From Bispira polyomma (Eukaryota), in contig OZ287748.1 in the NCBI GenBank assembly GCA_965649765.1, positions 29,512,001 to 29,576,000 on the forward strand: a stretch of 64,000 bases of DNA. The letters run 5' to 3'. A program made the position numbers and the translations under genes. Of this stretch, positions 7,516 to 45,607 are shown in pieces; position 1 is the first letter of the stretch, and every line of letters begins with the position of its first letter. Below the pieces are notes generated by a model. It saw only the letters and a list, made by a program, of their open reading frames with translations. It was not told the DNA's origin and searched no databases.

Positions 7516-7760
7516 GGCTGTATTCTCGAAAGACCTCAAGCTCAACTTTGACTCAGCTAAATTTAAAGACTATATGTCTCTGGCTGGGGTGATAAAGTTA
7601 AGGCACTGCATATTTGAACTATCTTTACTGCGCTGAAAGCTCTATTTAAATGAATGCTCACGAGTATAGATTGCCTCCATATACAAGGATTTACACATAG
7701 CTTTCATTTGAGTTAATAAGTCTTTTTTTTTTAGCTTGAGTTATTTACCAGAATACAGCC
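7516..7760. mobile_element. MITE-like element
   Basis: Inverted ends ggctgtattct...ctcaagct and agcttgag...agaatacagcc. Confidence 0.6.
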
Positions 7761-10575: not shown

Positions 10576-10907
10576 GGTACCCATTTATACAACTGGGTAA
10601 AGAGGGACAACTTTGTGTAAAACACCTTTGTGTAAAGCACCTTGTCCAAAGGTACAATCTCCAAGCCTGAAGCGAGGATTGAACCTAGGCTTTTAAAATC
10701 GCAAATCAAAAATAGTGGTCATATTCCCACCATGTATTTACCCTTGCTCCATTAGGCATAAGAACACAGCTTGCCTGGCCAAGGTACCCATTTATACAAC
10801 TGGGTAAAGAGGGACAACTTTGTGTAAAACACCTTTGTGTAAAGCACCTTGTCCAAAGGTACAATCTCCAAGCCTGAAGCGAGGATTGAACCTAGGCTTT
10901 TAAAATC
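10490..10907. repeat. Perfect 207-bp tandem duplication overlapping a SINE
   Basis: Units start at 10490 and 10697, with AATC microhomology at all three junctions. Confidence 0.92.
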
Positions 10908-20628: not shown

Positions 20629-23600
20629 AACTATTACAAGCTGGTAAGTAAACCTGTTGTGCTCTATATTACATGGCTTTGGATATGAGCTGTCTTTTCT
20701 ATATATGGCTTATTTTAATTACCTCTTGTAGTTGGCTCAATGAAGCTTTTGTTTCAAATTCTGTCTTTCATTCTACCTATGATTAAGGTTTGGCCACCTA
20801 CCATCTATTTCAAAAAATTACATTGAAATAAAAAGCGTATAGAACTTTTGGTGGTGACATTTTACTATAAGTGAACAACATCACTTTAAATACTATGTAA
20901 ACAATATTGTTTATATGCAGCTTTCTGTTGGACAATTATGTAATATTTCTATCAGAATTATATTTTTCTGCTGGTAAAATGCATTACTGAAAGAACCAAA
21001 GATGTTAAATGATTTAGCCATAAATAATACAAAGATATGTAGTTCAACTGCTAACATTACTTTTAGTAAATATTTACTAGTATATTTACTAGTTTATTTA
21101 GTTATAAATATTACAAATTACTTTTATTTTTTTTTACTTCAAGTAAGCAACATTACTTTAAATACTATGTAAACAATAATGCTGATACAAAGCTTTATGT
21201 TGGACCTTTTTGTAATATTTCTATCAGAATTGGTTATTCTAAGATGGTTTTACATACCAAACAAATCCTGGGTAATGAGACTTATCTGACAGATACAAGC
21301 ATGTCTGGTTTTGTATAGATCTATATATCCTCCATATGTAAATAGTGATACAATAGTAAATATTTTACTAATAGTAACTTTAGAAATCAAACTAGTTTGG
21401 CAATTGTATATTAATTTGTAATATTTATTACTCAATAAACTAGTAAATTTACTAGTAAATATTTAACTACAAGTAACTTTGGCAGTTCAACTACATCTTT
21501 TTGAAGTATTTATAACTACATCATTTAACATCTTTGGTTCTTTCAGAAATGCATTTTACCAGAAGAAAAACATAATATATTTACATCTCTTATACAACAT
21601 AACCCATAGGCAAACCTGTGTGAAAGAAGTAGAAAAAACAAAGACCTATGATGCTTCAGGTATTGTCAATAAAGCTGTGTTAAAAATAGATCTGACACTT
21701 CCCGAGCTCAACTTACATGTATTTTGAAAACGGGTGCTAGAGCACATGTTTTCTGTCAAAATGTTCTTGTCCTTCAAGAACAATCAGTTTTTTTAGATAT
21801 TTAGATCATAAGGGTATACAAAGTGGCATTTAGCTGTAGTTGATTTGCAGGACAAACCGTCTATGAGAGACAGTAACATATTTGTATCCACTTTTCTTTA
21901 ACCGATTTATCTGATTCGTTCTAGTTAGTTAGGCTTTAATGTCACTTTCAGCACGCTTTGTGTCATATGATGACATACTAGGGGATATATTAGAACAGGG
22001 TAGGTGGTCAAGGTGTTTTACTCTGCAAACTAGCAGCAAGATTACTGCCAACTTTCTCATATACACCCCAGTGGGCTGTTTGCACCCTTGACTGCATAGG
22101 TTGGAGGTAGGTCTCACCACAGTAGCACTGAGGACCCAATTTATGAGATTAGAAAAACCCAACATATTAATGGATTTTTATGTCTTCCATTGACACTCAG
22201 TGTACAGATTCTTGTAAATGAGGACACAGTGTCAGGTCTTTATTAGGTTAGGAGTCCAAGAAACACAAAAAGTACTTTCGGTTAGCATTCATTTGAAAGA
22301 TTTTTATTTTGATAATTTTTTTTATAGAGAGATTAAATAAATTGCATCATTGTGTCAATCCAGGTGGAGCCTAAATGTTGTCCTAAGTTGACTTAATCTG
22401 ATTTACAACCACCATCCATCAAATACTGCTATTAACTAATTATATGTGTTGGAGTTTAATTATCATGACTAATTCCCAAATTTTATTTTCCCATTTTTCC
22501 TGCACTTTGAATTCTTACTATTTGCTTACTTGGACATGATCTTCATTTTGTGACATTCTTAAAAAAAATACAATACTTTTGTATTAATGACCTTATCAGT
22601 ACTTGTTTGACAATTTGTTTTTTCTGTTTTCTTTTCATACATCATAAAGAAATAAGGTAGAAGGTTACAAAGTACATTAAGCACATCTGTTTTACCAGTT
22701 AAAACAAAGACTATTTTGGTTTTAACAGCTTTTACCATTGTGAGGTTATTTGTGTGAATCAACAGTGCTGCTGATGAGGGATACTGTTTTATGTATTGTT
22801 TTGTTGTCTATGTATTCTAATATTCAATTAATACACAATATAATAATATCAGGTGTTAACTTCCAAAATAACTGATTAAAATCACTCCCCAAACAAATAC
22901 ATTTAAACATGTAAATACCTGCACAATCTTCTGTTATAATTAGAAAGGCAACCCTGGTTCTATTATGAAGCATTACATCTACAATTCAAATATAATGATA
23001 ACCAGGACACAAACGCATGTAGGGATGGTTATTGGACTATATCTGTTACAAGCCTATCATAGTTCCATTTCATGTTTATGCAAATTAGGATAACAAAAAA
23101 CTACTAGTTCTTCATTTTAAAAGGCGGGTTTTCAATATAAGTTGATAAAGCACATACTGCAATCTTGTTGAAGCATCTCATGAACAGTGCCCAGGAAGAA
23201 GATATGTTAAAGTAAAAATAGTTACAGTAAATATGCTGACACAACAAAACCTGATGTGTATCCCTCTTCCCCATGCTTAGTTTTGGTCCATACAATAAAG
23301 TTAATATATATATAAGGGTAAGTCAACTTGCCAAAATGAAAATGTTAAAAAGATATGTTCTCTGTCAATACTTCAGCTCTAATGTTTATTCTGAGATTAA
23401 CTGTTTGGTATTAGGTTAATTCACTTCATGTATTAAAAATATTTTTACTTTATGTATTGGATCTGACCTCAAACATATATTTTATACTATCTAAATTTCA
23501 TTTAGGTTAAGTAAATAGCTTAACTTATAACATTGGTAGGCAGCGCCCAGGTGCGGGCGATTTCAGTTCACAGGGTCCCAGTCTGAAAAAGCTAATTGAC

Positions 23601-23781
23601 CTTGTTGCGGTTTACTATAAAATACGGAAAATTTCAAATTCTCCCGCCTTTCTTATTTTCATGTACTAGGAACAACTTCGAAACAATAGGCTTGGCGGTT
23701 GACGGTTTAGATTTGAATTTGTTGTTTGTGCACTTGGATAGTTTAGTTATTTTAGTGTTTTAATTTCAAATTTTAACTATT

Positions 23782-24781
23782 ATGTTCACAATGCCAAGTA
23801 TTAAAGATTTTAGTTGTTTCAAGTGTGGTCGAAAACATGAAAGCCCAGTGGGTAGAAAATGTGCTTATTTTGTGGTGCTGAGGAATCCATGGCTGTTGCC
23901 GGCTCCAGTGATGCTTCTACCTCCTCTTCAGTTCAGGGCAATCCTATTTCTGGACAAATTCTGACACAATTGCAATCCATGGCTGAAATGATGGAGAGGA
24001 TGGACCAACGAGTACAGCTCACGGAGGCGGCGATAGCGGGAGACCTCACCAAAAATCAGTAGTAGCTCTCTTTCTGTCAATTCTATAGTCGAACCAAGTA
24101 TTAAAGGTACTTCCAGTAATAGTTTTATTCCTACTGTTGAATTTCTAAAGAAAAACTCGGCCATTCAGACACAAGTAGAATAGAGATTAGTTGAATTAAA
24201 AGCTTTAAACGAGAATCCGACCCAAGGTAAGCTTAAGCTTAAATCCCAACGAGAGGGGGGGGGGTACTGAAGTTATGGTTAAAAAATTAGTCGAATGGCC
24301 ACAAAATCATGTACTTTCTGGGAGTCTGAAACTTGTCCAAGTTATGACGACTTAACTCTTAATCAGTGGGTCTGTGGATTCACTAGAATAATTCAAGATG
24401 ATATTGGAATACATGGCTAATTTGATTGAATACTCCCAGGATTTTTCCTGGGAGTCAGCCAAAGTGTGTCATGCTGTCATTCTGTCCACGATGGAGGTGG
24501 ACAAGTTAAAGTGGACAGAGGTCGATAAGATAGATCGTCTAAGAAGGGCTCATGCCCAAAGGCATATTTCTAATAATACCAGCCAGGGAAACAGTAAAAC
24601 TGGTACTAAGACAACTGTCAGTGGTAAGCAAAATTCGGCAAACTGTAAATACTTCCAAGAAGGTACATGCAAGCACCAAAATAACTATAAAACTGGAAAT
24701 ACCTACTTCAAACATGTGTGTGAGGCGTGTGGAGGTAGCCACAAGAACTCGGCTTGCCATAAGAAGGGTTAAAAAAACTAA
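23782..24781 (+). pseudogene. gag-like ORF1 of element 1 (frameshifts and stops)
   Basis: N-terminal CxxC...H...C (CFKCGRKHESPVGRKC), a helical middle part, WPQNHV...DFSWESAK, and a C-terminal Cys/His finger CKYFQEGTC...HVCEACGGSH...C that matches the gag end of element 2. Confidence 0.75.
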
Positions 24782-24805
24782 AGGGCCACTGCAGCGATGC
24801 AGTGG
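24772..24805 (+). promoter_or_regulatory. Putative -1 ribosomal frameshift signal, element 1
   Basis: A_AAA_AAC in the gag frame, 7-nt spacer, CCACTGC-agcgat-GCAGTGG hairpin. The following ORF (24802) is in the -1 frame. Confidence 0.78.
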
Positions 24806-27254
24806 GCGAAAAAATTATAAAGCGAATTCTTAGACGCACTGTATATAGTAAAGATTTTCAATCATATCACTTGTTTGACAAGTCGGTGATTAAAAAGATG
24901 TGTACATATAATAGAGGTATAACAAGCCAGTGTAGTTACAGCGAAGTCGTGGTTAAACCGCGTAGTAGCAGTAAGTATATGAAAAGTAATGTATTACAAA
25001 GTGTACATAAAAATACCAGTACTAATCCTAACTTTGTAAAACAAAACTTGGGGTGCAAAGCTCTCCCAAGACATGTAAATAAAGCAACAATGGGGGCGAC
25101 CAGAGCTAGGCAAACACACAAGGTGAGAGTTAAAAAACCACAACCTATTGTCAAAACTCGGGTTCCTCTCTTTGTGAATAAAAGAGTGTAATTGATTTCA
25201 ACAAACAAAACAATCAGTGGCAGGCTGACACGGCTAATAGATTTAGTGTGCTTGGCCAGCTTGATACCTCCATTGTTGAGGGTGATAGGGACAACAATGA
25301 AAGTGAGTGTTTGCTGGTGCCTATTGTTACCAACACACTAGCCAGTGGGGGAAATGTTAGTACCAAGAATAGGTGCAGTATTTCTTGCAAGGGTAATTCC
25401 CCTACACAGGGCAGTATAATTGAACGAAAGGAAATGCATTCTATTAAAATAAGGTCTTCCTAGTGACAAGTATGCATTTGATTTAAAACAAAAGCAGAAC
25501 AAGCGCGAATTGTCAGAAAAGGCAAAATTAAATGAAACCCACATCAAATGGCGTGAACAAAACAAGGTCCACTATGGCTTTATCCCTTTGTCTACATTGG
25601 GTACAAAAATATGGGACAATAGTTCAGAAAATTTGGGTGTTGATATTCTAGAAATGCATAATTTGTTGCGACAAGATGGTAGACAAAATTTCAATTACCA
25701 GTAAATTCCCAGCTAAATCTTGATAGGTGGAAATAGTATTTGGGTGAATATTAGGATTGGCAGTTACCTCTGCCAATTAAATATGGCTTTCCTCTTGACG
25801 TGTATTAGCCAATCAGCGTGGCCCAATCACAAATCCGCTTTGGAATTCCCTGAACACGTCGATTTCTATTTGAAGGAAGAATGTGATTATGGTGCAATGC
25901 TCGGGCCATTTATGAACCCTCCAATCAAAAATCTGCATTTCTTACCAATGATGACACGCACAAAAACAACCTCGAGTAATAGGTGGGTCATCGTTGATCT
26001 GAACTGGCCGAAGGGCCAATCAGTTAACGCTGGTGCTTCACCCACCACATACTTGGGTACAGATTTTATATTATCTTATCATTCTATCGACAATCTAACA
26101 AATGAGGTACTAAAACTGGGGAGAGGTTGTAAAATATTCAAAATTGACGTTAGTGGGGCATTTAGACATGTGCCCATTGATCTTGGGGAGATTGATTTAT
26201 TAGGCCTGAAGTGGGGTTTTTATTTTATAGATAAGTCACTCCCATTCGGTTATCAGAATGGGCGTACTATCTGTCAGAGAATTTCAGATGCAGTTAGATA
26301 CATAATGTACTCCGAAGGTCATAATGTCCACAATTATTTGGATGATTTGTTATGCATCTCACTCCTGAGTAAAATCTACACAACTTACCAACGCTTGCAG
26401 GTACTGCTATCTGAATTAGGACTTACAGTCAGCAAGAAAAAATTAGTGCCTCCTAATACTGTGGTTATATGTCTGGGTATTAGTATCGATACTGTGAAAT
26501 TTACTACTTTATTCCTATTGAAAAATTGCAGGAAATTAAAAATATATGTGTCAGATGGAGAAGTAAAAAGTCTTGTACCAAGAAAGAACTTCAGTTTTTC
26601 CTAGGGTCTCTATTATATATGGCAAAATGTATTAGATATGCTAGAGTATATCTTAATTGAATGTTAGCCCTGTTGAGAGATAATCACAGCAACAATAGAT
26701 TTCCTTTTACTGAAGAATTTACCAGAGACCTTAGGTGGTTTATTACGTTTATAAATCAATTTAATGGAGATTCTTTCTTCAATCACAAACCTGTCAATGC
26801 AAAAATTGAGTTAGATGCCTGTTTGACAGGCATGGGGGGCATATACAAAAATCAAGTATACAAATTACCAGTCCCTACAAATATGTCTCATTATAATATT
26901 GCGGCACTGGAGATGCTAAATATATTGGTAGCCTTAAAATTGTGGGCTGAGGCCTGGCGTGGATTCCGAGTATTGTTCAAATGCGACAACCAAGCTGTGG
27001 TCAGTGTCCTGTAAACGGGGCGAACAAAAGATCCAATATTGGCTACTTATACTCGCAATATATACATGTGGGCCAGTCGTTTCGATATTGACATCAAAGT
27101 TGTACATATACTAGGCGTTGATAACAGTATAGCCGACTTATTGTCTAGGTGGCACAAAACCAAGAATAATGAAGAAATTTTAGCTACTTTGGCAGGTCCT
27201 ATAGTTTGGTTAGATACTGACCACACTTTATTGCAGGTGGATAATAATATATAG
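24778..27254 (+). pseudogene. pol (N-terminal extension, RT, RNase H) of element 1, disrupted
   Basis: RT motifs KIDVSGAFRHVP, LPFG, NYLDD, CLGI. RNase H motifs LDACLTGMGG, IAALEMLNI, CDNQAVV, NSIADLLSR. Split over several ORF-track fragments. Confidence 0.92.
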
Positions 27255-27284
27255 CATAAATACCTCCATTTTTATGTATTTCAG

Positions 27285-28300
27285 CAACAAATCCAATGGA
27301 TAGGATGCTCACAAAGATGGCTTGCCAGAGATTGCATTCAGCTTTCGCTGCTTCCACAGCTAAAGCCTATGAGAGCATGTACAGACTATTTCTGGCTTTT
27401 GGGGTATTCATGAAATGGACCTCCACCCAGGTGAACGTTTTCATCCTTCTTGCATATTTAGAATTCTTAAATTTTAATGCTGTATCACCCTCTCAGATTA
27501 CAAATCACTTGTCGACCATCAAAGCTAAATGCATCCTGTTCCATTTGAATGTTGATGTTTTTCTGATCCAAGAATTTCATATTTTACCAGAGCCTTGTTA
27601 GTAAATAGACCTTTGCAAGTGAAATTGAAATGTATTTTTGACATACCTCTGCTTAGTGTTGTAGTACAGAAGTGTGACTATATGTATATGGGTCATGTAT
27701 TCAAGGCTGTTTACCTTACCAGTTTCTTCAGTTTTTTGCGACTCTCAAATTTATCTCCTCATTCAGTAAAGGATTTTTCACCTCTCAAGCATCTCGCCAG
27801 CGGCGATATCATGTTCAAGCCTGGTTACGTAGTCCTACTGGTAAAATGGTCAAAAACAATGCAAACTAATGATGCTGTGCGACTTCTCACCTTACCAGCT
27901 TTGTCCAATTCTATTTTATATCCAGTCACAGCCTTGAAGAACTTGTTGGCCATTACTCCTGCTGGTTCAAATCTTCTTTTGTTTCAGTTTAAGCTTTCGG
28001 CTTCCTGGATCCCTCTTACTGACACCCTGGTCAGGCGCCATCTCAAAATTGTCTTACAGATGCTGGGCTTACAAAATTCAAACCTCACCTTCCATGCTTT
28101 TCGACGTTCAGGTGCCACCTTTGCTTTTAATAATAATGTCCGAATCAAAGATATTCAGAGGCATGGCACCTGGACGTCGGAGTGTGTGGAGATATGTTAC
28201 AGACTCAGCCAATGCTAGTTCTCAGGTAGCCGACGCTTTCTGTGCAGCCCTACGTACTGCTTCATGTTCTAGGTTTGGTGGTCTGCCATATCTTATGTGA
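27285..28300 (+). pseudogene. Tyrosine recombinase of element 1, frameshifted
   Basis: FFSFLRLSN (R), KWSKT (K), HAFRRSGAT (HxxR), HGTW and, after a frameshift, VWRY (catalytic Y). Confidence 0.92.
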
Positions 28301-29441
28301 CAGTACATGTTTATATTAATGTATTTAAATAGAAACTTACAGTAACCATATTACTGTACTGGGCATAAGGTCACCTTACATAACACAGTACATAATATAC
28401 TTTTTTATCTAAAATTTGATTCAATAATCTCAAATTTCACTTACATTTAAGTCTACCTTACTAGTTCACATGAGGTTGACTTACTGCAACCACAAACTCA
28501 ACATGTGTCTTTCTTGGCTTGACCTGACCTTAAATTTCAGTTAAGTCACTGGTAGACTTAACTTAAGCCTGACACAAAATTTCGGATCAAGCTATGCCTA
28601 ACTCAATTATCGATTTAAAAGTGTATTTCTGGTCGCCTTATTCTCAATTTAAGGCAACCTTAGTAATTTCAAAATCCTTGTAGTTAAGGTGACCTTATGC
28701 CCTAACTTTATAACTGTATATATACTAAGTAGTAGCCTAACACATTCCAATAATACATAATAAAAAAAAGTACTTCTTTGACTTGAATTAAAAAGTCTGT
28801 GAGACTTATGTGACTGGAGGTGTGCCTTGTCCTTGACTCGGCTCCCAGGAGAAACAGGGGAGAAAGACAAGCACAGTAAGACATGGATTTTACTAAAAAA
28901 ACTTGTTTATTCCCCTATGAGATTCACAGGCAACATAAAGTGACAATGGCCATTGTAACATACCAGCAGCTGTAAGTTATAACACCAAACTTCTAACAGG
29001 AACCATCTGCAGCATCACATGCAAACTGTAAACATGCATCCACTGTATGCAAAACCCACTACAACTTTCTCACATTCCAACAACAAACATCTCGAGTGGA
29101 AGTATGTGACCAAAACAATGACAAAAGTAAAGGGTTGCCGTTCACAATAGAAGTACGTTGCTTTGTGAAAAATCTCTTAATTTTGTATATGAACAATTCC
29201 AAAATTTTAAATAAAATATAAACAATGCATGGTCACACTTATAAAACGTAGTGAATTAGTGAATTCACAGTTGTACTCATAGTGTTGTTTTAAACTCAAT
29301 CTGAAGAGCAAATGCACTTTATTTTTTTTAATAGCACATCTAAAACTTAAACTAGCTGTGCACTCGGGTATATAGGATTTGGTGGTAATTTGGACTAGTT
29401 TCTTACAACATAGTGTAATTCTCTTTATTTTTATCACCTTA

Positions 29442-29896
29442 TGTCCTGGTCCAACCGGCTGTCACGTTGGGAGTCGTTAGAAAATTAATTTGCGTAGGGT
29501 TTGCATGGAGTATGCAGGAGTTAACATAATATACATAAACATACATAACCTGGCGTGAGAGATGAGATGCAAAAAATTTATAATTTTAAACCGTTTGAAA
29601 TTTGGACACGCAAGAGATGCAAAAGTATGACGTCCTGAAATGTGGATATGTGTCACAGTGTGTAAATGTGCATCATCATGACGTCATTTTACGTGTATTG
29701 GCGTACTCATACATGTGATACGGGGGTTTAAATACATACTTGGACGTGAGCTTATGCATCCCCTGCGAGACTTTACAGCTTTTGATGTACTAATAGATGA
29801 ATTTTAAAGGAGTTTTGCATGACGTTTTGCATCAAATATTTCACAAGGCCATGTGTGACTTACATATCCTAACATAAATCCGGTGGGACCGGCCCA
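29442..29896. mobile_element. Degenerate Harbinger-like MITE
   Basis: Imperfect TIRs tgtcctggtccaaccgg / ccggtgggaccggccca with TTA on both flanks. The interior is richer in CpG than the flanks. Confidence 0.6.
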
Positions 29897-31854
29897 TTAT
29901 ACAATTCTTTGAAATGTATAGTTGTTTCTTTTAAAATTCTAAATTCCCTTCTTCTCAACAAATATCTTCACAAACTAAATTTGAAAGCTGCAACAACTAG
30001 TTTCAACATATGGACATAATTGTACTGTGATCACAATAAACACTGAACTTGTGGTCAATTTGACATCTTTTCTTTACCTTTTTGCCTACACAAGTTGTGT
30101 AACACCATTTAACTATAAATCCTTCAGTAAGATTGTCCTAAAACCTCAATCTGATCTTGATTCACCGGATATCTGTATTGATTAATGCTCTAGTATTTTT
30201 GTCGCATATATTGCTTTTTGGGGGATATTCTAAATGATTGACTTGATAAGGACACAGATTACTTAAGATATTTCTCAAATGCTTTCTTCTCCATCTGATA
30301 TGCCTAGTTTACAATAAATTACTGTGTCGTATTGTCGATAGTGTTAGAGGTCTCACACCCTTTGTGGCTAGGTTTTACGTCAATTTCAACTTTTACCCAG
30401 ATGTCCTTTTTTCTGCAACTCTTTTTTCTTTTTAGGGTAATAAAAGTGACCTTAAAATAGATCGGTATAGATTGGAACCTTTTCAGTAACTTTGTGAGGC
30501 CCTGTGGAGATATTTGACATTATATAAATCCTGAAATAAAAAAAAATCATAATTGAAAATCTAATCTGAACATAATGCCATAAAGAAATTTTAATATATA
30601 TGTGGTAAGGTATGTATGTCAAATTGTAGACTTATCGTTGGTCTCGACCCAGATTCAATCAACAAATGTTGTTCCTATTGTCCTTGGGAAATGTACCTGT
30701 AAAAAATGATGAAATCTGTAGTTTTCGAGAAGATCTATGGCAATAAGTCAGTGACGTCTTAATTGACTTAGAAACAATGAACCCGTATAATGTCAACTAA
30801 ATTCATTCATATATGATTGCCTCTATTGCATTACCAAGAAAATGATTTTTTTGAGCTTACATTAGTGTTAATTAGAAAACAATACTGAATAATTAATTGT
30901 GAGTTGATTAAAAGGAGGAGGCTATATGTTTAGTTATAACTTACTTGTAAAACATAATCATTGATGTAGCACAGAAAATAGAAAAGAAATCTTAAAAAAT
31001 TATGATGGTTGCCAAAAAGGAATATTTGGGTAATTTTTTAAAAGTTGTACAAGGAATTATGCAATATAGTGGGGTCAAATATATAATCAAAATCACACTA
31101 TCTAAGAAATCAGACATTTTTTGGAAGAGTTACAAAAATTTAAGATTGCCGCCATAATCACCTTTTACAGGCCTGCTCTCTATTTAAAAACACTAAAATA
31201 ATCTGTCAATTTAAATAGTGTAAATAAACTGTGTTTAACCTGTAATCTGATGCCTTCTATATAAATTTGATATGATATTGACATCTACTTTTACCATACA
31301 TTATTGTCTCATATTGTCACTGTAGTGGCAATTGATGATGTAGTGGTAACACACTCACCTCAAACCTCTGCAGCTGTGGGTTCGAATTTTAATCCTGGCA
31401 TGTATGTCAGAAAATTGGCAGTAGACGTGCTGAATGCCAGTACTTTGCAAAACAAAAAACATTGACTTACTTCCCTGTTCTGATTCTCTCTGTTAGTGAA
31501 TTGCTCACCATGATACAACACAAAACATGTTGAAAGCGAGGTTAAACCCAAACTAAACACGTTGTAACTGTAAGCGGGGACTGTTTCTGTTGTAGATTCT
31601 ATTTAATGGAACCTTTCTGCTTGAGATTTAACCTAACAGTAGTCATAAATAACACTTTCTATGCAGTTACTACATCCATAATCAATTCTTGCTCCAACAA
31701 AGCCAAGGATGTGTGCTGCCAGAACAATGATCACATGTGGTTGCTGTATCCATTATATTTATGACACCAATCTATGAGGAATTTATATTGTAAACTAAAC
31801 GTTTAGATTTATTTAAACTTTAGTGTAGTTTATAACAAACTACATATTAAGGTC

Positions 31855-32055
31855 TCGGTGCTGCAGTGCTGACTTACTCGCCTCCCACCTCTAAGATCTT
31901 GGTTCGAAACTCGGCTGGCGCTTGAAGTGGGAAACATGGTCGCTGCCTTAAAGTGTAGAATCTTGACTAACTAATATACACATGTTCCTCCAACACTCAA
32001 ACTGTCCCTCGTCATATGACCTATACAATTTGTTGAAAGGGATGTTAAACCTGAA
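31855..32055 (+). mobile_element. tRNA-derived SINE
   Basis: ggttcgaaac B box; body similar to 36657-36894; tail gttgaaagggatgttaaacc. Confidence 0.7.
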
Positions 32056-35000: not shown

Positions 35001-35210
35001 CAAGTGCCAAACAAATGTGGCTTGTTACATTAGAATTTCCACACCTTAGCCTGTCCTTCTGTCAAGCACTGACATCAATATCAACACTCCAAAATACCTA
35101 ACAACAGGATTTCTTAGCTGTGTTTTCTGGCTTCAACCAATCAAATTTATTGGCACATCTACAACAACCAATGACTAATTTAGGATATAAATAGTTCATC
35201 TAATACTTAC

Positions 35211-35424
35211 CACAGTTAACTACACTCTCATCCGCCCCGTTGTAACACTCTGCTATCCCATTACACTTCTGGTCACTAGGAATACATTGGTACTGTTCTT
35301 GTTCGGCCTGCTCTCCACAGTTAAAGTAGTCCTGGTCATCGGGACAGGGTACCAGCTGACTGGTGGTGACGTCACAGCACAGGACACATAGAACCAAGCA
35401 AGCTAACTGTTTGTTGATGGCCAT
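35211..35424 (-). CDS. First coding exon of an LDLa-repeat protein: signal peptide plus LDLa repeat 1
   Basis: Reads MAINKQLACLVLCVLCCDVTTS (signal-like) then CPDDQDYFNC...QCIPSDQKCNGIAECYNGADESVVNC (6 Cys and acidic LDLa motif). The start context is acagccATGG. There is an acceptor ttttacag| 29 nt upstream (exon starts 35453) and a phase-1 donor G|gtaagt at 35210. Confidence 0.9.
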
Positions 35425-36656
35425 GGCTGTTTTAAAGATCGTCTGAGATTGTACTGTAAAACAAACCCCAACACAATATATCATAATGCAGACCTTTGTA
35501 AGATAAAGGGCAAGTATAAATATTGCAGTAATAAAGAAATATGATCATAGTAATATGAGAAAAAAATATGAGTCGAATTTTATTAATGTTCCAAAGTTCT
35601 GTGGGAATGTTCCTATTGATAGGAAGACTTTAAGTTAGTGTTTTACAGTTTTCCATAAATTTATGTACATACCATATTTTTGTTGAAATTTAACATGTTT
35701 TTCAACACATGCACAAAAAAAGAAGAAAAATGAAAACTCTTAACAGAAATTTGTAAAGTAATGAAAGAAACTCCATATTTCCCTGGGCTGTCCACAAATA
35801 TAGGAAAGTCAAAAGTATGTATTTTTGGGAAATACAGTTAATCCTTAAAGCTATTCAGTTCTCCCGTCTTAGTCCAGATCGTCAGCAAACGGATTCAAAT
35901 CATAAATGCAGGAAAACCAACACATGCGGTCAATTCTTGAACCACCAAGATTCAAATCAGGACAACCAACACTTGATTGTAATTCTGATTATAAATAAAT
36001 ATAAGACTTTAAGTCTAAATCCATAGACAGTATTCAAGATCTTAATAAAGCTTCTGCTGAAAAATCAGAGGAAAATTGAAGAGTCATGGAAAACGCTCCG
36101 TAACACATCAACAATGTATTAAGTTTGTACTCGAAGTCAGTCTGAATATTCAGTCCACCCCCTTTACATATGTTAGTAACTTCTGATGAACAGAGAACAA
36201 CAATGTCTTGATTTTTCTACACTGGCCTCCCACCTTAGACCGAGTTTTCTGCCCTCGAAAGTGCTTTGATATACTTATGGTGCATGCCGAGGGACAGAGT
36301 TCTTTACTATACCAAATTGTTGTAAATGTGTAAGGGCACCTATAACAGACACACCAAATGTTTTTAAATGTTGTTTGTGGTTATATTGATTAAACTAATA
36401 TCCGTACACAATATTATAACTTATGGCCCACTTAAAAGAAAATATTTCCGTATATTTCTTATTGAAGCGAACATATTAAACTGCTGTGTCAAATTTACAA
36501 AGATGTGGTATAGTAAACGTCTCTGTTCCTCAACATTCGTACACTAGTAAAAATCAAAGCATATTGTCAATAGACAGAAAACTTTGTCTACTCCCACCTC
36601 TGCCATCACAGTTTTAAATCTCCGTCCCAGCATGTATAAAAGATTTGAATTCGGAT

Positions 36657-36894
36657 ATTTAATGTCCAGTCTAGTACCTTTTAGTAGGTTATATTGGGAC
36701 AGGTAGTTGGAAACGCTGGAGGAAACACTGCATACAGTCAGTCAAGGTTCTGCACTGAAACCAGCGGCCCACACTAAGGAACTACCACCTTTCCCACATA
36801 GGCATTGACGGGATTCGAACTCAAGCCGCCCAGAGGTGAGAGACCAGTGATTGTGAAGCGCAATGCTTGCTAACCACTAGGCCACCGCGGCCCC
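36657..36894 (-). mobile_element. tRNA-derived SINE (best-preserved copy)
   Basis: On the minus strand: A box gtggcctagtgg, B box gagttcgaatccc, and a body ending ...gtttcctcc...ggacattaaat. Related copies lie at ~31330-31560, ~31855-32055 and ~32090-32250. Confidence 0.85.
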
Positions 36895-38232
36895 TGTCTG
36901 TATAAAAGAAAGCCATGCTGAAGGGCAGTGGTTTCCAAGAGCATCAAACCCTAACCCACCAATCCTGTTCTGATTTACTCCACCAGTGAACTGGCCTTCG
37001 TGTTTATAATACAAGTCTGTTCAAAGCACAGTATCCTTTGTGACTGAGGCTAGTAAATAATCAAATAAACAAGAATTGTCTTTTAAAAAAAGACACAGGA
37101 GCTCAGTGTGAAACATTAACGTTGATATCACAACGATATACTCAGACCCCAGGCTGTGCCCGATAACAATAAACCTGCCCCCCCCCCCCCCCCCTCACTT
37201 TGGCAGGGTCGATTGCTTCCACCTAATCCATGAAAGCCGTACATATTTTCTAAGATGGAGGCGCCTTTTGCAGAATGAAAACGATATCATTTATTCCAAA
37301 TTATAGTGTGCCGGTAGCTCATATGATTGAAGGTATCCCTAAGGGATTTGAACCTAAGGCCATGGCTAACACTAGGCTTATATAAACAGGGTAATTCCCC
37401 GAGGAGACAACATATCTGACTAAATGACTAGTGTCTGGTACAGATAGCTTTTTATCAATTACCAACAATAATTGCAGTTGAATGCACAAAATAATGAGTT
37501 AATTTGAGATAGGAAAAAGGCAATCATGAAACACATCTCACAAATAACTGTTCATTAGGTATGAGGTAGGCATCATTTTAGTGCATGGGTTATTGAACAA
37601 ACCACGTGAGCCACACATTTACCAGGTTTCTGACAGGCTATTTTGGTAGCGGTTTTTACATGCCTATTATGTCATATGGTTACCTCTTAAATCATGTAGT
37701 AGTTCATATTGCTTGTCAGAAACCACATAACTATGTTGATAGCTTGATAGCATTCTTGGTCTTGGTGAGTTTCTTTTGGGTGAGGAGTAAGGTCATTCTT
37801 TTTAGTTGTAGTTTTTCGATGGCATTTCTATATTGTTAATCAATAAAAAAAATTTGAGATATTCAGCAATCAAAGCACACTCTATTACTAAGCATATTGT
37901 GTCTTTTTGGCGTTCACCACACTGAACACAAGGTTATACAATTATGTAGCCTTGAGTGTAAAATATAGATACAAAAGCTGATTTTGCTAAACTTATTACT
38001 CAAAATCATGTCTATCACTATTAATAACACTTCTTTGGAATACAAATAACTAGATTTATTCAAATATATACTCATTTATATTCCTTTGTCTGGTATTTAA
38101 AATGTTAGTTGACTATCTTTTGGCTGCCACAGTACAGCCAACTAACACCAGTGACTGGCATTCCCTAACTGAAGACCTGGGCTTGAAGATGACCATTTAT
38201 AAATGTCCCCATGGCAGGGGTGGGGGGGGGGG

Positions 38233-38435
38233 GGGCGTGGTGGCCTAGTGGTTATAAGCCTCTGCTTTAAAACCCCTGGCGTCTGTCCTTTGGGGATCGA
38301 ATCCCAGATTATTTCATCATGTGAGAAAGAGTGTCACAAACCTGTCATGGGCTTGTGTTTTCCCCCCATTACTACTAAACCTGGGCCTCCCGATATGACC
38401 AAAGCTGTTAAAAGTGACGTAAAACACAAATAAAT
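38233..38435 (+). mobile_element. tRNA-derived SINE
   Basis: gtggcctagtggtt A box, gatcgaatccc B box, tail gttaaaagtgacgtaaaacacaaa. Confidence 0.75.
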
Positions 38436-39326
38436 ACAAATTCAAAGTCCCTAGGGCTCTTTGTGTAATTTGGGGATAGAGGACCACATGTATTAGGCTG
38501 TTATTGCTAGGAACTTCAGACTGAAATCGAACCTATGTGCTCTGTGTGTATTACCAACTAGACCACGGCTTAAGAATATTATCCAACAATATACGGCCTA
38601 AACCACTGCCACTTACTCCAAAATCAGTTAAAGGCAAATACTATTTGCAAATGTTTAGATTTGAGCTCTTGTTGTACTCACTGCAGTAGAATATATCCTA
38701 CGGCGAGAAAAAGGGACTAAGTGTAATTGATAGGCTCCTCATTCCTATTCCATGCTTTGGCTTTTATGGTTTATCAATCTGTAATAGTGTAATAGTAGTA
38801 GCAGTAATAATGACTGGATGTAATCACAGACCAATTCCTTTGGGGCTGAGTGGTTTGTGACATGCAACTTTCTACAAAGGACACGGCCATTTTCTTGCCT
38901 CTTAAATCCAGTTAGGTCTCCTTCTCTTCTAATAAACAACCTACCCCTTTCAAAGAATGACTTATAGCTATAGCAAGACAGGAGTTTGCTATTACTAGCT
39001 TTTATTTTGAATGAATTTTACTACCGACTGTTTCAAACAACTCTTCCACCTGGGCATGGTGTAACTTTGTTGCTTTATTCCATTAATGTTACCTCTATAA
39101 CTAAACTAATCAACAAACCCAACACATATCTAAACTCAGGTGTACTTGAAATGAAACATTTCAGCAGTTGCACTGCTAGGAAAAGGAATAGCAAAATATG
39201 TAATTTATGCCAATAACATTATTATTATTATTGTCTCCCATGTCCTGGTGGATAGAGAGTTAGCCTGGTGATCTAAAGGTCCCTGATTTGACTCCCAGCA
39301 AAGTCATATACTGGATTACTGGGGAA

Positions 39327-40100
39327 AACATCTCTGGGCATGCATTGCCTACTAATAGGACCAATGCTATGTTATATAACATCTCTGGGCATGTGTTGCC
39401 TACTGGTGAGGACCAATGCTATGTTATGTAACATCTCTGGGCATGCATTGCCTACTAATGAGGACCAATGCTGTGTTGTATAACATCTCTGGGCATGCAT
39501 TGTCTACTGATGAGGACCAATGCTATGTTATATAACATCTCTGGGCATGCATTGCCTGCTAATAGGACCAATGGTATGTTATATAACATCTCTAGGCATG
39601 TGTTGCCTACTGGTGAGGACCAATGCTATGTTATGTAACATCTCTGGGCATGCATTGCCTACTAATGAGGACCAATGCTATGTTGTATAACATTTCTGGG
39701 CGTGCATTGCCTACTGATGAGGACCAATGCTATGTTATATAACATCTCTGGGCATGCATTGCCTACTAATGAGGACCAATGCCATGTTATATAACATCTC
39801 TGGGCATGCATTGCCTACTAATGAGGACCAATGCTATGTTGTATAACATCTCTGGGCATGCATTGCCTACTAATGAGGACCAATGCTATGTTATATAACA
39901 TCTCTGGGCATGCATTGCCTACTAATGAGGACCAATGCTATGTTGCATAACATCTCTGGGCATGCATTGTCTACTGATGAGGACCAATGCTATGTTATAT
40001 AACATCTCTGGGCTTGAATTGCCTATGATGAGGACCAATGCTATGTTATATAACATCTCTGTGCATGCATGCCTACTGATAAGAACTAATGCTATGTTGT
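39327..40100. repeat. Minisatellite, 51-52-bp unit, ~15 copies
   Basis: Unit aacatctctgggcatgcattgcctactaatgaggaccaatgctatgttatat. Confidence 0.97.
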
Positions 40101-40239
40101 AGGATTTGCAAGGTTATGTTATCGATTTATATCCCTTTACGGAAATAAAGCATCATAGGAGGACGCTTCAAATAATTTGTGTGGTGTGGAGATTTGCAAA
40201 GTTGAAGATGAAAAAGAATCTTGAATACATACTATTTAC

Positions 40240-40451
40240 AAGCTAAAAATAATCACAAAAATGGACATAGTAAAGGCATGCCCTGCAGATATTTTCAAAA
40301 GGGCACTTGCCCACAGAAAAACGACCACGAAACCAATGGCAAACTCTATACACATGTATGTGCAGCTTGCTCTGCGATAGGCAAAAATTTTCCCCACCCT
40401 GAAAAAGATTGTAGGAAAAGCAAGGCTAATGCAGTTCCAAAAAACGACTAG
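40240..40451 (+). pseudogene. 3' remnant of gag, element 2
   Basis: CRYFQKGTCPQKNDHETNGKLYTHVCAAC...HPEKDC aligns to CKYFQEGTCKHQNNYKTGNTYFKHVCEAC of element 1. Confidence 0.8.
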
Positions 40452-40472
40452 GGCACTGCAAAACAGCAGTGC
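40439..40472 (+). promoter_or_regulatory. Putative -1 ribosomal frameshift signal, element 2
   Basis: A_AAA_AAC in the gag frame, 7-nt spacer, GCACTGC-aaaaca-GCAGTGC hairpin. The pol ORF (40469) is in the -1 frame and open from the slip site. Confidence 0.8.
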
Positions 40473-42807
40473 AAGTAAAAAACTCGGCATTAACACCGGG
40501 TACAAATAGTCACCCATGTAGCAGAGCAGGCTTCAATTCGTCTAGAATCATTGTAAATTCTAAGGTTGCAAACGTGAGTAGTGACAACTGGAGATCTGAC
40601 TGGGCGAGATTCAGTAATAAAACATATGCACAGGTCGTGAAACAAAGGCTCTCAAGCCCTAAACAGGCTAGTAACAACTCAAAACACAGAGAAGTAGTTC
40701 AAAATGAAAAAAGGATCCCCAGTTGTCACACCAAAAATGTTGTAAATAAAAAATGTGTAAATACAAAAGTTCACCATGGTGTAACAAAGCAATGTACCCA
40801 ACTAAAAGACGTGAAAAAGGTGAGGATTTGTAGGTCACCTGGGCGTGAAAGCCCAATTAAGCCTAACAATAACATCATTGTGCAAAATCGTTTTGACCCA
40901 CTTCTCACACTTTGTCATACATCACCCGTTGTAGGTGGGAAAAGTGACACATTACTTGCTAACAAGGTCAGTGGACCACAAAAGGTAAACATAGATACTG
41001 TTACAGTACACAAAGACAAGTATAACTTGCAACTTCAAGTCAAAAACAAACATAAAGAGAAAGTAGCACAGGCTAAAAATAAGGATACATTCAAAAAGTG
41101 GATTAGCCAGACACGAGGTAAGTTGGGCTTTATTCCTCTAGGTCCTCTAAAAAATCCACCCGATGACAATCCAAGTGAAAATACTTTCTCTGAGCTTGAA
41201 CTGCATTCTAAGGTAAAAAGTAGCAAAAATTACAATTTCATTGGAGAGCAATTAGTAGTGCAGTCACAACTCAAACACGAGCGTTGGAAAGAACTACTAG
41301 TGGATTACTGGGATACCCAGCTTCCTCATCTTATTCGCTACGGGTTTCCCTTGGACTTTAATCGGCACTCAGAATTAAGTTATAAAGAAGAAAACCACCA
41401 TTCGGCGCGTGAGTACACCGATGACGTCATGGCCTATCTAGAAGAAGAAAAACAGCATGTGGCGATTCTGTGTCCGTTTCATAAGCCACCCATACAAGGC
41501 ATGCATATTTCCCCATTCATGACAAGAGAAAAACCAGGTGCACCCCATAGAAGGGTCATCATAGACTTAAGTTTCCCGCCGGGGCAATCAGTTAATTCTG
41601 CAATACGTCAAAATTGATACTTAGGTACAAACTTTCTTCTGACACTGCCCACCATTGATGAAGTAACAAACAAAATTGTAAAATTAGGCAAAAATTCACT
41701 CATTTATAAACTGGACATAAGTCGCGCCTTCAGGCGCGTAAAACTTGATCCAGCCGATTACGACTTGCTAGGCCTAAAACTAGAAAACTATTACGTTGAT
41801 ATGTGCCTGCCATTCGGCTATAGGCACAGAAGCGCCATATTTCAGCGCCTAAGTGACGCCATGCGTTACGTCATGCGCGGTAGAGGCTATGACGTCATCA
41901 ATTATATAGATGACGTCATAGGATTTGGAAACGGCCTGTACGTCCATGACGCTTACGACGCCCTCTATAGGCTAGTGCAAGAATTAGGTTTCGCTATTAG
42001 CAGTAAGAAATTAGTACCTCCAAGTACTAGGGTAACGTGTCTAGGCGTCTTGATTGACACAACTATGTTTACAGTAGAGGTGCCACCGGAAAAACTTGCG
42101 CAAACAATTCAACTCTGTAACAGCTGGGTAGGTAAAAAAGAATGCTCGAAACGAGAACTCCAATCACTGCTGGGCTCATTGCTTTATATTTCAAAATGTG
42201 TTCATATTGCCAGAATTTTCTTAAATAGGATGCTAGACAAACTGCGCAATGCTCCAGATGCAAAACGCATAGGCCTGGAGCTTCCATTCTTCCAGGATCT
42301 TAATTGGTTCACTAAATTTACACAAAAATTTAATGGCAAAGCCTTCTTTGACCACAGCCCTGTCACAGATGAAATTGAGCTTGATGCCTGTCTAACAGGC
42401 TTAGGAGGTAGATGTAATAATATAGTTTATACAAAAATCCTCCCCCTTAATTATCTGAGAATGAACATTGCACATTTGGAAATGCTTAATATTTTAGGAA
42501 AAACACTTGGAAAGGTAAGAAACTGGTAGTCCACTGTGACAACCAGGCAGTGGTCACCATCTTGAACTCTGGCAAAACCAAGGACTTAACTCTTGCAGCC
42601 ATTGCAAGGAACATTTTTATGGAAATTGCTGAGTCAGATATAAATTTAAGGCCAGTACACATTTTAGGTAAACTGAATGTCGCAGCCGACCTCCTATCTA
42701 GATGGCACAAAACTCAAGAACCAGACATTAAACTACAACAAATAATACCTGAACCACACTGGGTAAAGGTTCAGGATGAATTACTAACTATTGACAGGGG
42801 TATATAA
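40445..42807 (+). pseudogene. pol (RT and RNase H) of element 2
   Basis: HISPFMTREK...RVIIDLS, LPFG, NYIDD, LDACLTGLGG, HCDNQAVV, NVAADLLSR. There is an in-frame stop at 41615-41617 and a deletion/frameshift near 42495. Confidence 0.93.
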
Positions 42808-42817
42808 TTTATTTCAG

Positions 42818-43789
42818 ATCTCTCTCCGCTGGTGTTGCAGCTAGCTGGTCAGGCTGCCCATACAGCTAGGCAGGCCCTTAGGCCTGTCACTCAGTAAGCC
42901 TATCAAACCATGTTCAAGGTTTTCATAGTTTATACTATATTTGTAAGTGCCTATATTACACACATTTCCCCCATTTTACTACTTTCGTTTCTACAGGTAC
43001 TGGTAGCCAGTAAAGTGTCCCAGCCCTCTATTGCCAACTATCTGGCAGCAATAAAAGCTAAACTCAGCCTATATGGTATAACTGTGGCTGCATTTGCAGA
43101 CCCTCGTATCAAGTATTTTCAGAAGGCACTTATCTTACAAAAACCTTTTAGGGCCAGAATTAATAAGGCTTACAGAAGTGGTAAAAATCTGTGATACAAT
43201 GTTCATGGGGCAAATCTTCAAGGCTGCTTACTTATTAGCCTTCTTCTCCTTTTTAAGAATTTCGAACTTAGTTCCCCACACACTCAGTACGTTTAATCCA
43301 TTAGAACAGCTTGCTAGGGCGGATGTGCTTTTTGCTCCCCCTGGACTCCAAGTAATAATAAAATGGTCCAAAACCCTTCAGGATAGAAATTCAATAAAAA
43401 TCATCAAGGTTCCAAGTATCAGGAACTCTGTACTCTGCCCTGTGGCAGCAATTAGAAACATTCTAGCTCTTTCACCAGCTAATAAAAACTCACCTCTATT
43501 CCAGTTCAAGACAGCTTCAGGCTGGGTTCCTCTCACAGATTCAAAAATAAGACATAACTTGAAGCAAATTCTAGTGAGATTGAATTTGACAGACTCTCCC
43601 ATAACATTTCACGATTTCAGACGTTCAGGGGCCACACTGGCCTTTAATAACCATGTTCCTTTACAAGAAATTCAAAGCCATGGCACATGGACTTCAGAAT
43701 GCGTTTGGAAATATATTACGAAGGATCATGAAGCTTCAGACCAAGTGGCCATAGCCTTTCAAATCCTACTTTCCAACCCTACTCACTAA
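42818..43789 (+). pseudogene. Tyrosine recombinase of element 2
   Basis: FFSFLRISN, KWSKT, HDFRRSGAT, HGTWTSECVWKY. There is a nonsense codon near 42895 and a frameshift near 43165. Confidence 0.93.
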
Positions 43790-43800
43790 CTTGGGTTTGG

Positions 43801-44204
43801 GTGCTTTTCTTAATCCATTTTATACTTTAAACTTGTTACTTATGTATCTCAGACTAAGGTCACCTACATCTTCAAACTTACACTTAAGTTAAAACTTAAA
43901 CCCATTAAGGTTACCCTAATTTAAACAACCATCTTAAGCTAAGATGGCCTCAAACTAAGCCAATCCGGCATCTTAAGGTAAGATGACCTTAATTTCAAAC
44001 TGTAAACTCAATTTGGGGTAACCTTAGTATCTTAACTTAAACTCAGTTTAAGGGTACACTTTCTGATCTCCTTAAACCCCTGGTGACCTTAGTCTTTCAG
44101 TATGTATATAGTGTAGTGTAACCAACTTAGAATAAAACTAATATTCCCAACGGCTATAGTTCTTACTGTGTTATCTCCAACGGTAAGGCCACAATAGGGC
44201 ACTG
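43801..44204 (+). repeat. Split direct repeat B1 of element 2
   Basis: Nearly identical to 45205-45607; fewer than 10 differences seen in ~400 bp. Confidence 0.93.
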
Positions 44205-45204
44205 TGCAAGGTAGCCCGAAGGGGCTAGTAGGGTCAGTGCTAGAAAGGATCTTTTTAAAAACTATTCTGGTCTGCATGACCTCAATGCCCATTGGCTCTC
44301 ATTAACCCAATTACACAGCTAATTCCCGCCAAATAGCCTAAGGGGTTCACTTTTACAATTGAAGTCAACAAGGCAACACGCCATTTTAAGATATCTTAAT
44401 TTTGTTTCCCACCCTCATCCCCTACTCACTCCTTTCAGTTGGCTATAGCGTCGTCTGGGAGCAAATTGCAGAAGGTGGGGTCCCTGTTCTCTCCCTTTAT
44501 GCCCTTAGGCGCAGAGGGGGGCAAAGGGGGTGCCGGGGTGAGGCTTCGACCTGTCAGCAACATGGCTCGACTGCAGTCTTGCACTCTGGTGCTTCCTTGG
44601 GGGCCCTCAGGGCTCCCACCTTCTTGTCTCCAATAATTTACTGGGAAACCAGTCCCCTAATCAGGGTCTCTTTTTATTATAGCCTGCTGGCCGGAGGAGA
44701 TACAACCTTATCACAAATTGTGTATCAAATAACATGTCTTTATTAATGTGTATCAAACTTTAACTTAATGTGTCAACTAATGTATATTAGAGGGAGTGAT
44801 AATATTGTCAATATGTACACAATATAAAACAAAACTTGTCAGTAATGTGTAACGATGGAATGTGTCAAGACATATTCAAGTGTAATTAAAATGTCAATGT
44901 CATAAATATAAATATGCATGTATTAACCACGAGTGTGTTAGTTTCAGATCACATGGAGCAAGTGATCAACATCCATGGCGTGCCGCGGCCAGCAATCAAA
45001 AAGCCTCTGGTCGGGCTGTGTCCAAGTCAAGCTCCAAGATATACTTAATGTATTATTGTACCTCGATTTCATTCGATTTGCAACATCGTGGTACATCTCT
45101 GTAGGTTTGACGGGACATTAATTTTAGATGTGCTGTTCTTTTAGTTTTTAGCTAGAACAGGATTGCTTGTTACTGCTTTTACAAATTTTTTTTACTCTTG
45201 TTAT

Positions 45205-45607
45205 GTGCTTTCGTAATCCATTTTATACTTTAAACTTGTTACTTATGTATCTCAGACTAAGGTCACCTACATCTTCAAACTTACACTTAAGTTAAAACTT
45301 AAACCCATTAAGGTTACCCTAACTTAAACAACCATCTTAAGCTAAGATGGCCTCAAACTAAGCCAACCCGGCATCTTAAGGTAAGATGACCTTAATTTCA
45401 AACTGTAAACTCAATTTAGGCTAACCTTAGTATCTTAACTTAAACTCAGTTTAAGGGTTCACTTTCTGATCTCCTTAAACCCCTGGTGACCTTAGTCTTT
45501 CAGTATGTATATAGTGTAGTGTAACCAACTTAGAATAAAACTAATATTCCCAACGGCTATAGTTCTTACTGTGTTATCTCCAACTGTAAGGCCACAATAG
45601 GGTACTG
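45205..45607 (+). repeat. Split direct repeat B2 (element 2 terminus)
   Basis: Copy of 43801-44204, running from taatccattttatac to ccacaataggg. Confidence 0.93.

Follow-up and report, generated by a model that had tools for sequence, protein, structure and literature searches.

Ngaro-like retrotransposons, known from zebrafish, Xenopus (DIRS-53_XT), fungi, and Cafeteria, encode a reverse transcriptase (RT) with ribonuclease H (RNase H) and a tyrosine recombinase (YR) in the order gag, RT/RNase H, YR, and the open-access texts on these and other YR elements describe overlapping or frameshifted open reading frames (ORFs) only (PMC9210276, PMC3783388, PMC8547959). How the three ORFs of a YR retrotransposon are expressed from one RNA, and how the recombinase encounters the cDNA, is essentially undescribed in open-access text. 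Among retroviruses and env-bearing long terminal repeat (LTR) elements, some have a splice donor inside gag, so that the protein encoded at the 3′ end begins with Gag residues. Here, we analyze a 64-kb stretch of the Bispira polyomma genome (contig OZ287748.1, positions 29,512,001 to 29,576,000; hereafter the window, with positions counted from its first letter) that contains two decayed Ngaro-type elements, W1 and W2. In these copies and in their relatives, a slippery heptamer followed by a hairpin marks the gag-pol junction, and Gag-Pol is very probably produced by −1 programmed ribosomal frameshifting. A donor-like site in gag and an acceptor-like site at the pol/YR junction are conserved in matching phase as well, and we regard splicing of the N-terminal part of Gag (GagN) to the recombinase as the best explanation of recombinase expression, a reading to which we would give about an even chance.

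W1 and W2 are dead copies belonging to two families of one Ngaro-type YR retrotransposon lineage. RVT_1 and Phage_integrase are detected by Pfam in both, and their order is gag, RT/RNase H, YR; the encoded proteins are approximately 50% identical (47% in RT and 53% in YR), which indicates two families of a single lineage. All ORFs of at least 130 codons in the window, which is AT-rich (approximately 34% G+C) and contains no Ns, fall within these two plus-strand elements. Protein searches gave ENA proteins only, 35% to 64% identical, and twelve contig look-ups, all in one ENA assembly (ERZ22147071), provided a comparison set of 13 related elements; the names used for elements are L001, L002, L003a, L003b, L004a, L004b, L005 to L011, and L069. 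L043, labelled as a human gut metagenome contig, was excluded from all comparisons. The counts given below come from this assembly and the window.

The frameshift cassette, as we will call the heptamer A_AAA_AAC together with its hairpin, sits in both window copies where the gag and pol frames overlap by approximately 19 nt (W1) or 22 nt (W2). The hairpins of both copies are GC-rich. A pattern consisting of the heptamer and both stem arms matches only these two sites in the 64 kb, and matches nothing in 100 shuffles. Beyond the window, the cassette is found at all 14 gag-pol junctions, with an identical heptamer in 13 of them and a single-base difference in the 14th, which belongs to a decayed copy. 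(A T at the seventh heptamer position in L001 was considered as a functional variant and rejected, as that copy is decayed.) At those checked junctions where the gag end is undecayed, the heptamer lies in the gag register, and a zero-frame gag stop follows 3 to 36 nt past it. Pol has no start codon of its own: the −1 frame opens only 6 to 48 nt upstream of the heptamer, and in intact copies it remains open for 773 to 974 codons.

Pairing in the hairpin is conserved. In a gap-free alignment of 12 cassettes (W1 and 11 relatives), 91.7% of the cells are paired and six pairs are invariant, while two stem pairs show compensatory changes (G-C/C-G at one, and A-U/C-G/U-A at the other); the covariation score exceeds that of all 500 shuffles (500/500) and collapses in slid controls. 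Unrelated stems occupy the same distance in L004b (14 bp) and in L069 (6+3 bp with a bulge), giving three unrelated stem sequences overall. Across the lineage, the spacing from heptamer to hairpin is 6 to 10 nt, and the z-scores of the cassette folds range from −3.7 to −6.9. The −1 shift by which the original prediction, made from the letters of this stretch, had proposed that Gag-RT/RNase H is produced is supported by the presence of the cassette at every related junction and by the start-less pol. In a separate scan of metagenome contigs for the heptamer and stem pattern, 57 loci were obtained; none of the 56 screened had gag, pol, or YR homology, and we discarded them as chance matches.

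A second signal lies at the pol/YR junction, where a YAG whose G opens a YR codon (phase 1) is present in 15 of 15 cases, although its distance from the pol stop spans 5 to 134 nt. The CAG of W1 ends 30 nt past the pol stop and that of W2 10 nt past it, the G being the first base of a YR-frame codon in both. The codon before the acceptor AG has the form NYA at all 14 junctions tabulated (TCA, ACA, TTA, GTA, ATA, or CTA) and encodes S, T, L, V, or I, whereas the third base varies in every one of the 92 other variable codon columns at the YR N-terminus. We also observed that the 134-nt spacer of L069 (6864-6995) holds four successive units of pyrimidine tract plus YAG, three of which share one register, an arrangement that looks like the outcome of duplication in the acceptor region. 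The short gag-pol overlap, the YR frame beyond the pol stop, and the two cis signals shared in the same register (A_AAA_AAC with its hairpin, and a T-rich tract ending in CAG at phase 1), all of which had been claimed for the two window copies, were confirmed on reexamination.

A donor-like site in gag, which the original prediction did not name, matches this acceptor. At one conserved gag glycine (motif NEQ-G-KF), AG/GY (the slash marks the putative exon end) is present in all 13 elements that keep this part of gag, as AG/GT in 7 and AG/GC in 6, and wherever the gag frame is open at this point, the site is in phase 1. The codon ahead of it encodes Q, S, A, K, or P, yet its third base is A in 13/13 elements; only 2 of 180 columns behave in that manner. 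Nucleotides are invariant while amino acids vary, then, at the donor as well as at the acceptor. Since both sites are in phase 1, a GagN-YR fusion would be in frame. Furthermore, AAGT follows the donor in all 6 GC donors as opposed to 1 of the 7 GT donors (Fisher's test, approximately 0.004, uncorrected for phylogeny), and genuine GC-AG introns show compensation of that type. Candidate splice sites were scored against the generic splice-site consensus. In a low-confidence structural model, the donor glycine (residue 127) appears to follow the end of a long predicted helix; mean AlphaFold2 pLDDT values were 38.6 for gag (alignment A5) and 40.4 for the N-terminal region of pol (alignment A4), too low for a fold search. 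Besides the Cys/His knuckle near the Gag C-terminus, the Gag N-termini of L001, L003a, L005, L007, and L069 contain a second small Cys-X2-Cys...His...Cys motif, which would belong to the putative GagN exon.

Could the signals simply be meaningless chance features of two dead copies? Both window copies are indeed pseudogenes, and short motifs such as YAG are common; however, the three signals recur in register in 13 to 15 elements whose proteins are only 35% to 60% identical, young intact copies included, and we consider coincidence extremely improbable. The features described from W1 and W2 by the original prediction are conserved in relatives (cassette 14/14, YAG 15/15, and, for the newly recognized donor, 13/13), and intact relatives retain both the signals and a pol without a start codon. 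The parallel expectation that their YR ORFs would likewise lack an ATG start holds in part, as some families do have one.

The start codons of the recombinase bear directly on how it is expressed. Its conserved N-terminus corresponds to the first helix of the SAM-like domain, and 7 of 15 junctions lack an ATG ahead of it; the initial methionine reported by the gene caller is in fact TTG in L003a and GTG in L009 and L011. Full-length YR ORFs without an ATG make up two abundant families, P0361 (38 members) and P0357 (20 members), and nearly all full-length members of P0361 share one start place, with one sequence occurring on 11 contigs. This abundance shows that ATG-less recombinases are not confined to dead copies. 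Of the window copies only W2 is ATG-less, the W1 ATG lying four codons past the CAG. Where an ATG exists, its position differs by family: it lies 2 to 5 codons past the AG in L069, L010, W1, L005, and L004a, overlaps the pol stop in L002, L004a, L007, and also L069, and is found 30 nt upstream of the pol stop in L008. Such an unconserved start fits an ORF that would be entered from an upstream exon.

The same start codons invite another explanation, namely that the frameshift is real but that the recombinase is translated from unspliced RNA by ribosomes that finish Gag-Pol and restart, through termination-reinitiation or some other form of internal initiation, at a start codon by the pol stop; on this view, the AG would be conserved under some other constraint. 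The overlaps of stop and start in L002, L004a, and L007 (and by inference in the P0308, P0316, P0330, and P0340 families), together with the ATG that overlaps the pol stop in L069 and the one 30 nt ahead of it in L008, are what this model would lead one to expect. So is the relation between the frames: at 12 of 14 junctions YR is in the −1 frame relative to pol, and the spacers, 5 to 134 nt long, all leave a remainder of 2 when divided by 3, which would follow from a reading of the spacer that starts at the overlap (L008 and W2 depart from this relation, W2 having pol and YR in the same frame, unlike nearly all relatives; W1, whose pol end is decayed, was left out of this count). However, P0361 and P0357, both abundant, offer no ATG at which to restart, and the stretch from the pol stop to the AG is closed in the YR frame of L011 and L069. 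The pol stop is moreover preceded by a conserved Ile codon, which makes an ATG automatic with every TGA stop, so that chance should account for about half of the overlaps. Very little protein would result from a restart that follows more than 1100 codons read only by shifted ribosomes, and the nucleotide-level invariance of the YAG and of the gag AG/GY would be left unexplained. Termination-reinitiation as it occurs in several RNA viruses and in elements of the long interspersed nuclear element (LINE) type resembles the present case in its stop/start overlap, seen at the pol/YR junction in four families with the downstream frame at −1, and differs from it in that most families here have no such overlap. 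On balance we judge reinitiation to be unlikely.

The −1 relation of the two frames, with the YR frame usually opening about four codons before the pol stop, might also suggest that recoding happens again where pol ends, by a −1 shift or a hop, to give a Gag-Pol-YR polyprotein. The overlap there is short and shows neither an X_XXY_YYZ site nor a conserved structure, the YR frame is closed past the pol stop in L011 and L069, and in L008 it is the other frame that is used. With no slippery site and a closed frame in two families we rejected a second frameshift at the pol stop, and recoding of any kind at this place seems to us highly improbable. An A/T-rich sequence around the pol stop was likewise considered as a TATA box with a downstream initiator and dropped, as the CAG lies too close and a start would still be missing from the ATG-less families.

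Alternatively, the YAG may be a genuine acceptor that is joined to something other than mid-gag, such as a leader donor or, should the host employ one, a trans-spliced leader, yielding a monocistronic recombinase mRNA and no Gag fusion. An ATG 2 to 5 codons past the AG, as in the five elements listed above, is the layout expected of a 3′ gene behind an acceptor. On the other hand, an ATG ahead of the conserved N-terminus is missing at seven junctions, including two that belong to abundant families. The element leaders showed no conserved donor, and the phase-matched conserved site in gag would have to be a coincidence. An upstream exon of this other kind therefore appears quite improbable.

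Several observations weigh against the spliced GagN-YR fusion itself. Six of the 13 donors are GC, and GC donors are rare among ordinary introns. The pyrimidine tracts rank at the top only in W1 and L004b and are average elsewhere. The donor was found by searching for conserved phase-1 sites, which makes its statistics partly post hoc, and the elements, all from one assembly and the window, are not phylogenetically independent. No fused GagN-YR ORF occurs among the 120 best YR matches (query P0121; lengths up to 556 aa) or among 10 GagN matches (query L007 gag), the two exons having been searched separately rather than as a joined model; neither does GagN adjoin YR anywhere in the 12 related loci and the window, in which no processed copy was found. 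In four families an ATG in the YR frame overlaps the pol stop (L002, L004a, and L007) or lies 30 nt upstream of it (L008). Finally, a purely intronic spacer does not predict the −1 relation of pol and YR, which none of the models explains. The splicing part of the original prediction accordingly stands in mixed condition: it has gained a conserved, phase-matched donor and a conserved YAG, and has against it the lack of a fused ORF or processed copy among the sequences covered, mostly average tracts, GC at about half of the donors, and an ATG by the pol stop in several families.

From the observed anatomy and conservation of the three signals, we infer a ribosomal shift, a splice, and a fusion that might work together as follows. 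The full-length RNA would be translated into Gag. Some ribosomes, stalled by the hairpin 6 to 10 nt downstream, would slip by −1 on A_AAA_AAC and continue into Gag-RT/RNase H. The YR ORF, just past the pol stop, would be expressed from a spliced RNA in which the phase-1 donor in gag (AG/GT or AG/GC) is joined to the phase-1 YAG, and the product would be an N-terminal part of Gag (approximately 125 to 205 residues, with the small Cys/His knuckle and long helices) fused in frame to the recombinase. Because no protease is encoded, the fusions would act uncleaved. More tentatively, and at somewhat less than an even chance, this lineage of Ngaro retrotransposons as a whole may run on a retrovirus-like program without protease or integrase, comprising Gag, frameshifted Gag-RT/RNase H, and a recombinase made solely as a spliced GagN fusion; GagN would then carry the recombinase to the particle or the target, and how much RNA is spliced and how much stays genomic would depend on the weak donors, GC or GT. 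The coordinates of all features in the two window copies are collected in Table 1.

Table 1. Features of the two Ngaro-type copies, in window positions (MFE, minimum free energy; A1, B1, A2, B2, split direct repeats).
Feature	Positions	Strand	Basis and remarks
W1, decayed Ngaro-like element, copy 1	23534..28745	+	Bounds from paralogous flanks; order gag, RT/RNase H, YR
W1 gag, broken	23791..24772	+	tblastn with intact relatives' gag; Cys/His knuckle retained
W1 donor-like site AAG/GT at conserved gag glycine codon (24226-24228)	24224..24232	+	Homologous to phase-1 AG/GY in 12 relatives
W1 slippery heptamer A_AAA_AAC	24772..24778	+	Gag register; gag ORF ends 24772; pol open in −1 frame from 9 nt upstream
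W1 putative frameshift-stimulating hairpin, 8 bp, 4-nt loop, 7 nt past heptamer	24786..24805	+	MFE −16.8 kcal/mol, z = −5.1
W1 pol, RT and RNase H, broken	24772..27254	+	RVT_1
W1 acceptor-like tract ending CAG (G = 27284)	27263..27284	+	13/17 pyrimidines, best of 122 YAG sites scanned; phase 1 of YR frame
W1 tyrosine recombinase, broken	27285..28258	+	Phage_integrase; first ATG 27296
W2, decayed Ngaro-like element, copy 2, 5′-truncated	40221..45607	+	Gag tail, pol, YR, 3′ split repeats
W2 gag remnant, last ~55-75 codons including Cys/His knuckle	40221..40451	+	Comparison with relatives' gag
W2 slippery heptamer A_AAA_AAC	40439..40445	+	Gag register; gag stop 6 nt beyond; −1 frame open from 9 nt upstream
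W2 hairpin, 7 bp, 6-nt loop, 7 nt past heptamer	40453..40472	+	MFE −13.3 kcal/mol, z = −5.0; alignment A3
W2 pol, RT and RNase H, broken	40439..42807	+	RVT_1
W2 acceptor-like tract ending CAG (G = 42817), directly past pol stop	42808..42817	+	Phase 1 of YR frame; pyrimidine content average
W2 tyrosine recombinase, broken	42818..43789	+	Phage_integrase above Pfam cut-off; no ATG ahead of conserved N-terminal helix
W2 split direct repeat B1	43801..44204	+	97.8% identity over 404 nt to 45205-45607
W2 B1-B2 interval, expected place of A2 plus extra sequence	44205..45204	+	Analogy with L069, L008, L005
W2 split direct repeat B2, element 3′ end	45205..45607	+	Direct-repeat match to B1

Both copies are heavily damaged. 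Aligned by tblastn with the gag of intact relatives, W1 gag has at least one frameshift and 3 to 8 in-frame stops, varying with the reference; the portion of its pol that can be aligned to intact pol has at least one frameshift and 4 to 6 stops, and its YR, compared with four intact YRs, has two frameshifts and no stops. W2 pol has one frameshift and 1 to 2 stops relative to intact pol, and W2 YR one frameshift and one stop. Terminal repeats are not detectable in W1. W2 has lost the front approximately 260 codons of gag, the leader, and A1, no A1 partner being left upstream, and a 114-aa ORF in its B1-B2 interval has zero Pfam matches.

The assignment to the Ngaro type follows from architecture, which is that given in PMC8547959, PMC9210276, and PMC3783388. 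L069 is a young element (A1 = A2 at 100% and B1 = B2 at 99.8%) with the canonical order A1-[ORFs]-B1A2B2 and with all of its ORFs open (gag 373 aa, pol approximately 820 aa, YR 323 aa), and the ORFs of L007 are open as well (gag 315 aa, pol 964 aa, YR 331 aa). Split direct repeats are complete in L069 and also in L008, L005, L004b, and L001, while W2 keeps only the B1/B2 pair. Pfam detects RVT_1, the RNase H-like RVT_3, Phage_integrase, and an N-terminal SAM-like domain in intact relatives, and finds in them no methyltransferase, protease, or DDE integrase (rve), the pol proteins examined being 964 aa and 766 aa long. The W1/W2 lineage thus combines RT/RNase H with a tyrosine recombinase in the order gag, RT/RNase H, YR, with no methyltransferase after RNase H. 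DIRS1-like elements are marked by inverted terminal repeats, an internal complementary region, and a methyltransferase domain in pol; inverted repeats spanning the element were not found here (the repeats are direct and split), nor was such a domain. Split repeats are compatible both with PAT-like elements, whose RT groups near that of DIRS1, and with Ngaro, and the absence of the methyltransferase domain favors Ngaro. The two divergent elements of DIRS order recognized in the original prediction are, by these features, of Ngaro type, and its remark that no protease motif is visible agrees both with the Pfam results and with PMC3783388. Searches of PDB sequences with intact YR and gag gave nothing significant.

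Several further features of the surrounding sequence deserve mention. A tandem array of approximately 15 copies of a 52-nt unit (39327-40098, 90% matches) ends 122 nt upstream of the W2 gag remnant, at the place where the gag front, leader, and A1 would be expected; its units are not a whole number of codons long, and the array retains no homology to GagN. Also upstream of W2, a long C-run (37163-37198) and a long G-run (38220-38255) form imperfect inverted arms approximately 1 kb apart, and the sequence after the G-run looks tRNA-like, but ARAGORN finds no tRNA there or elsewhere in the window. The flanks of W1 (21800-23533 and 28746-29165) recur approximately 5 kb upstream (17015-18575 and 20218-20628) at 85% to 90% identity, and this upstream copy encloses an unrelated filling of 1.64 kb (18576-20217) with breakpoints identical to those of W1, which could reflect either a composite repeat or a locally duplicated segment that received a different insert in each copy. 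Elsewhere, a 207-nt unit is perfectly (100%) tandemly duplicated at 10490-10907. An Rfam scan of the window gave no families at the gathering score, and the W2 cassette only sub-threshold chance matches. Among the relatives, L007 is flanked on both sides (1-1664 and 7435-12996) by a tandem repeat of approximately 682 nt whose units are 99% identical and each contain a 78-aa ORF with no Pfam match; the phase of the array continues across the element. The repeat could be either a satellite that served as the target or the split repeats of L007 itself in an (AB)n array. In L002, a LINE-type element (Exo_endo_phos and RVT_1) is nested within the Ngaro pol region (8365-11668).

For annotators of this lineage, the conserved frameshift cassette is a precise marker of the gag-pol boundary, and it puts retrovirus-style recoding outside the world of LTR elements and retroviruses. 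If real, the GagN-recombinase splice would mean that the principle of enzymes riding on Gag had been invented independently, and it would provide one explanation of how ORF1 influences Ngaro integration: in the Ngaros of Cafeteria, loss of ORF1 goes with an altered integration preference (PMC8547959), a report that serves here as context only and would be compatible with a recombinase attached to part of Gag. Among the open-access papers searched, none links Ngaro to ribosomal frameshifting or to a slippery site, and none reports that a YR retrotransposon is naturally spliced. The novelty that the original prediction had supposed is upheld to the extent of that literature, in which a frameshift-plus-splice expression plan for the Ngaro group appears undescribed; the founding subscription papers lie outside this scope, and the statement is provisional.

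Compared with the Ngaro-like elements described to date (PMC9210276, PMC3783388, PMC8547959), the lineage studied here has the same gene order, the same lack of methyltransferase, protease, and DDE integrase, the same size of 5 to 6 kb, and the same split direct repeats A1-[ORFs]-B1A2B2, complete in relatives and partial in W2. It differs from them in having no hydrolase ORF, and the open-access descriptions report overlapping or frameshifted ORFs with neither a defined heptamer and hairpin nor splicing. The gag-pol junction closely resembles those at which retroviruses and LTR elements produce Gag-Pol, with an X_XXY_YYZ heptamer in the gag register, a spacer of 6 to 10 nt, a stable stem-loop, a gag stop shortly downstream, and a pol without a start codon; the differences are that this is a YR retrotransposon without a protease, in which Gag-Pol would remain uncleaved, and that the stimulator looks like a simple hairpin, no search for a pseudoknot having been made. 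The proposed splice, in turn, parallels the spliced mRNAs for the 3′ genes of retroviruses and env-bearing LTR elements (some with the donor inside gag), which likewise combine a 5′ donor with an acceptor at the end of pol, an often start-less 3′ ORF, and weak splice sites that leave most of the RNA unspliced. The version proposed here would differ in that its upstream exon contributes 125 to 205 Gag residues and in that the 3′ gene encodes a recombinase rather than an envelope protein.

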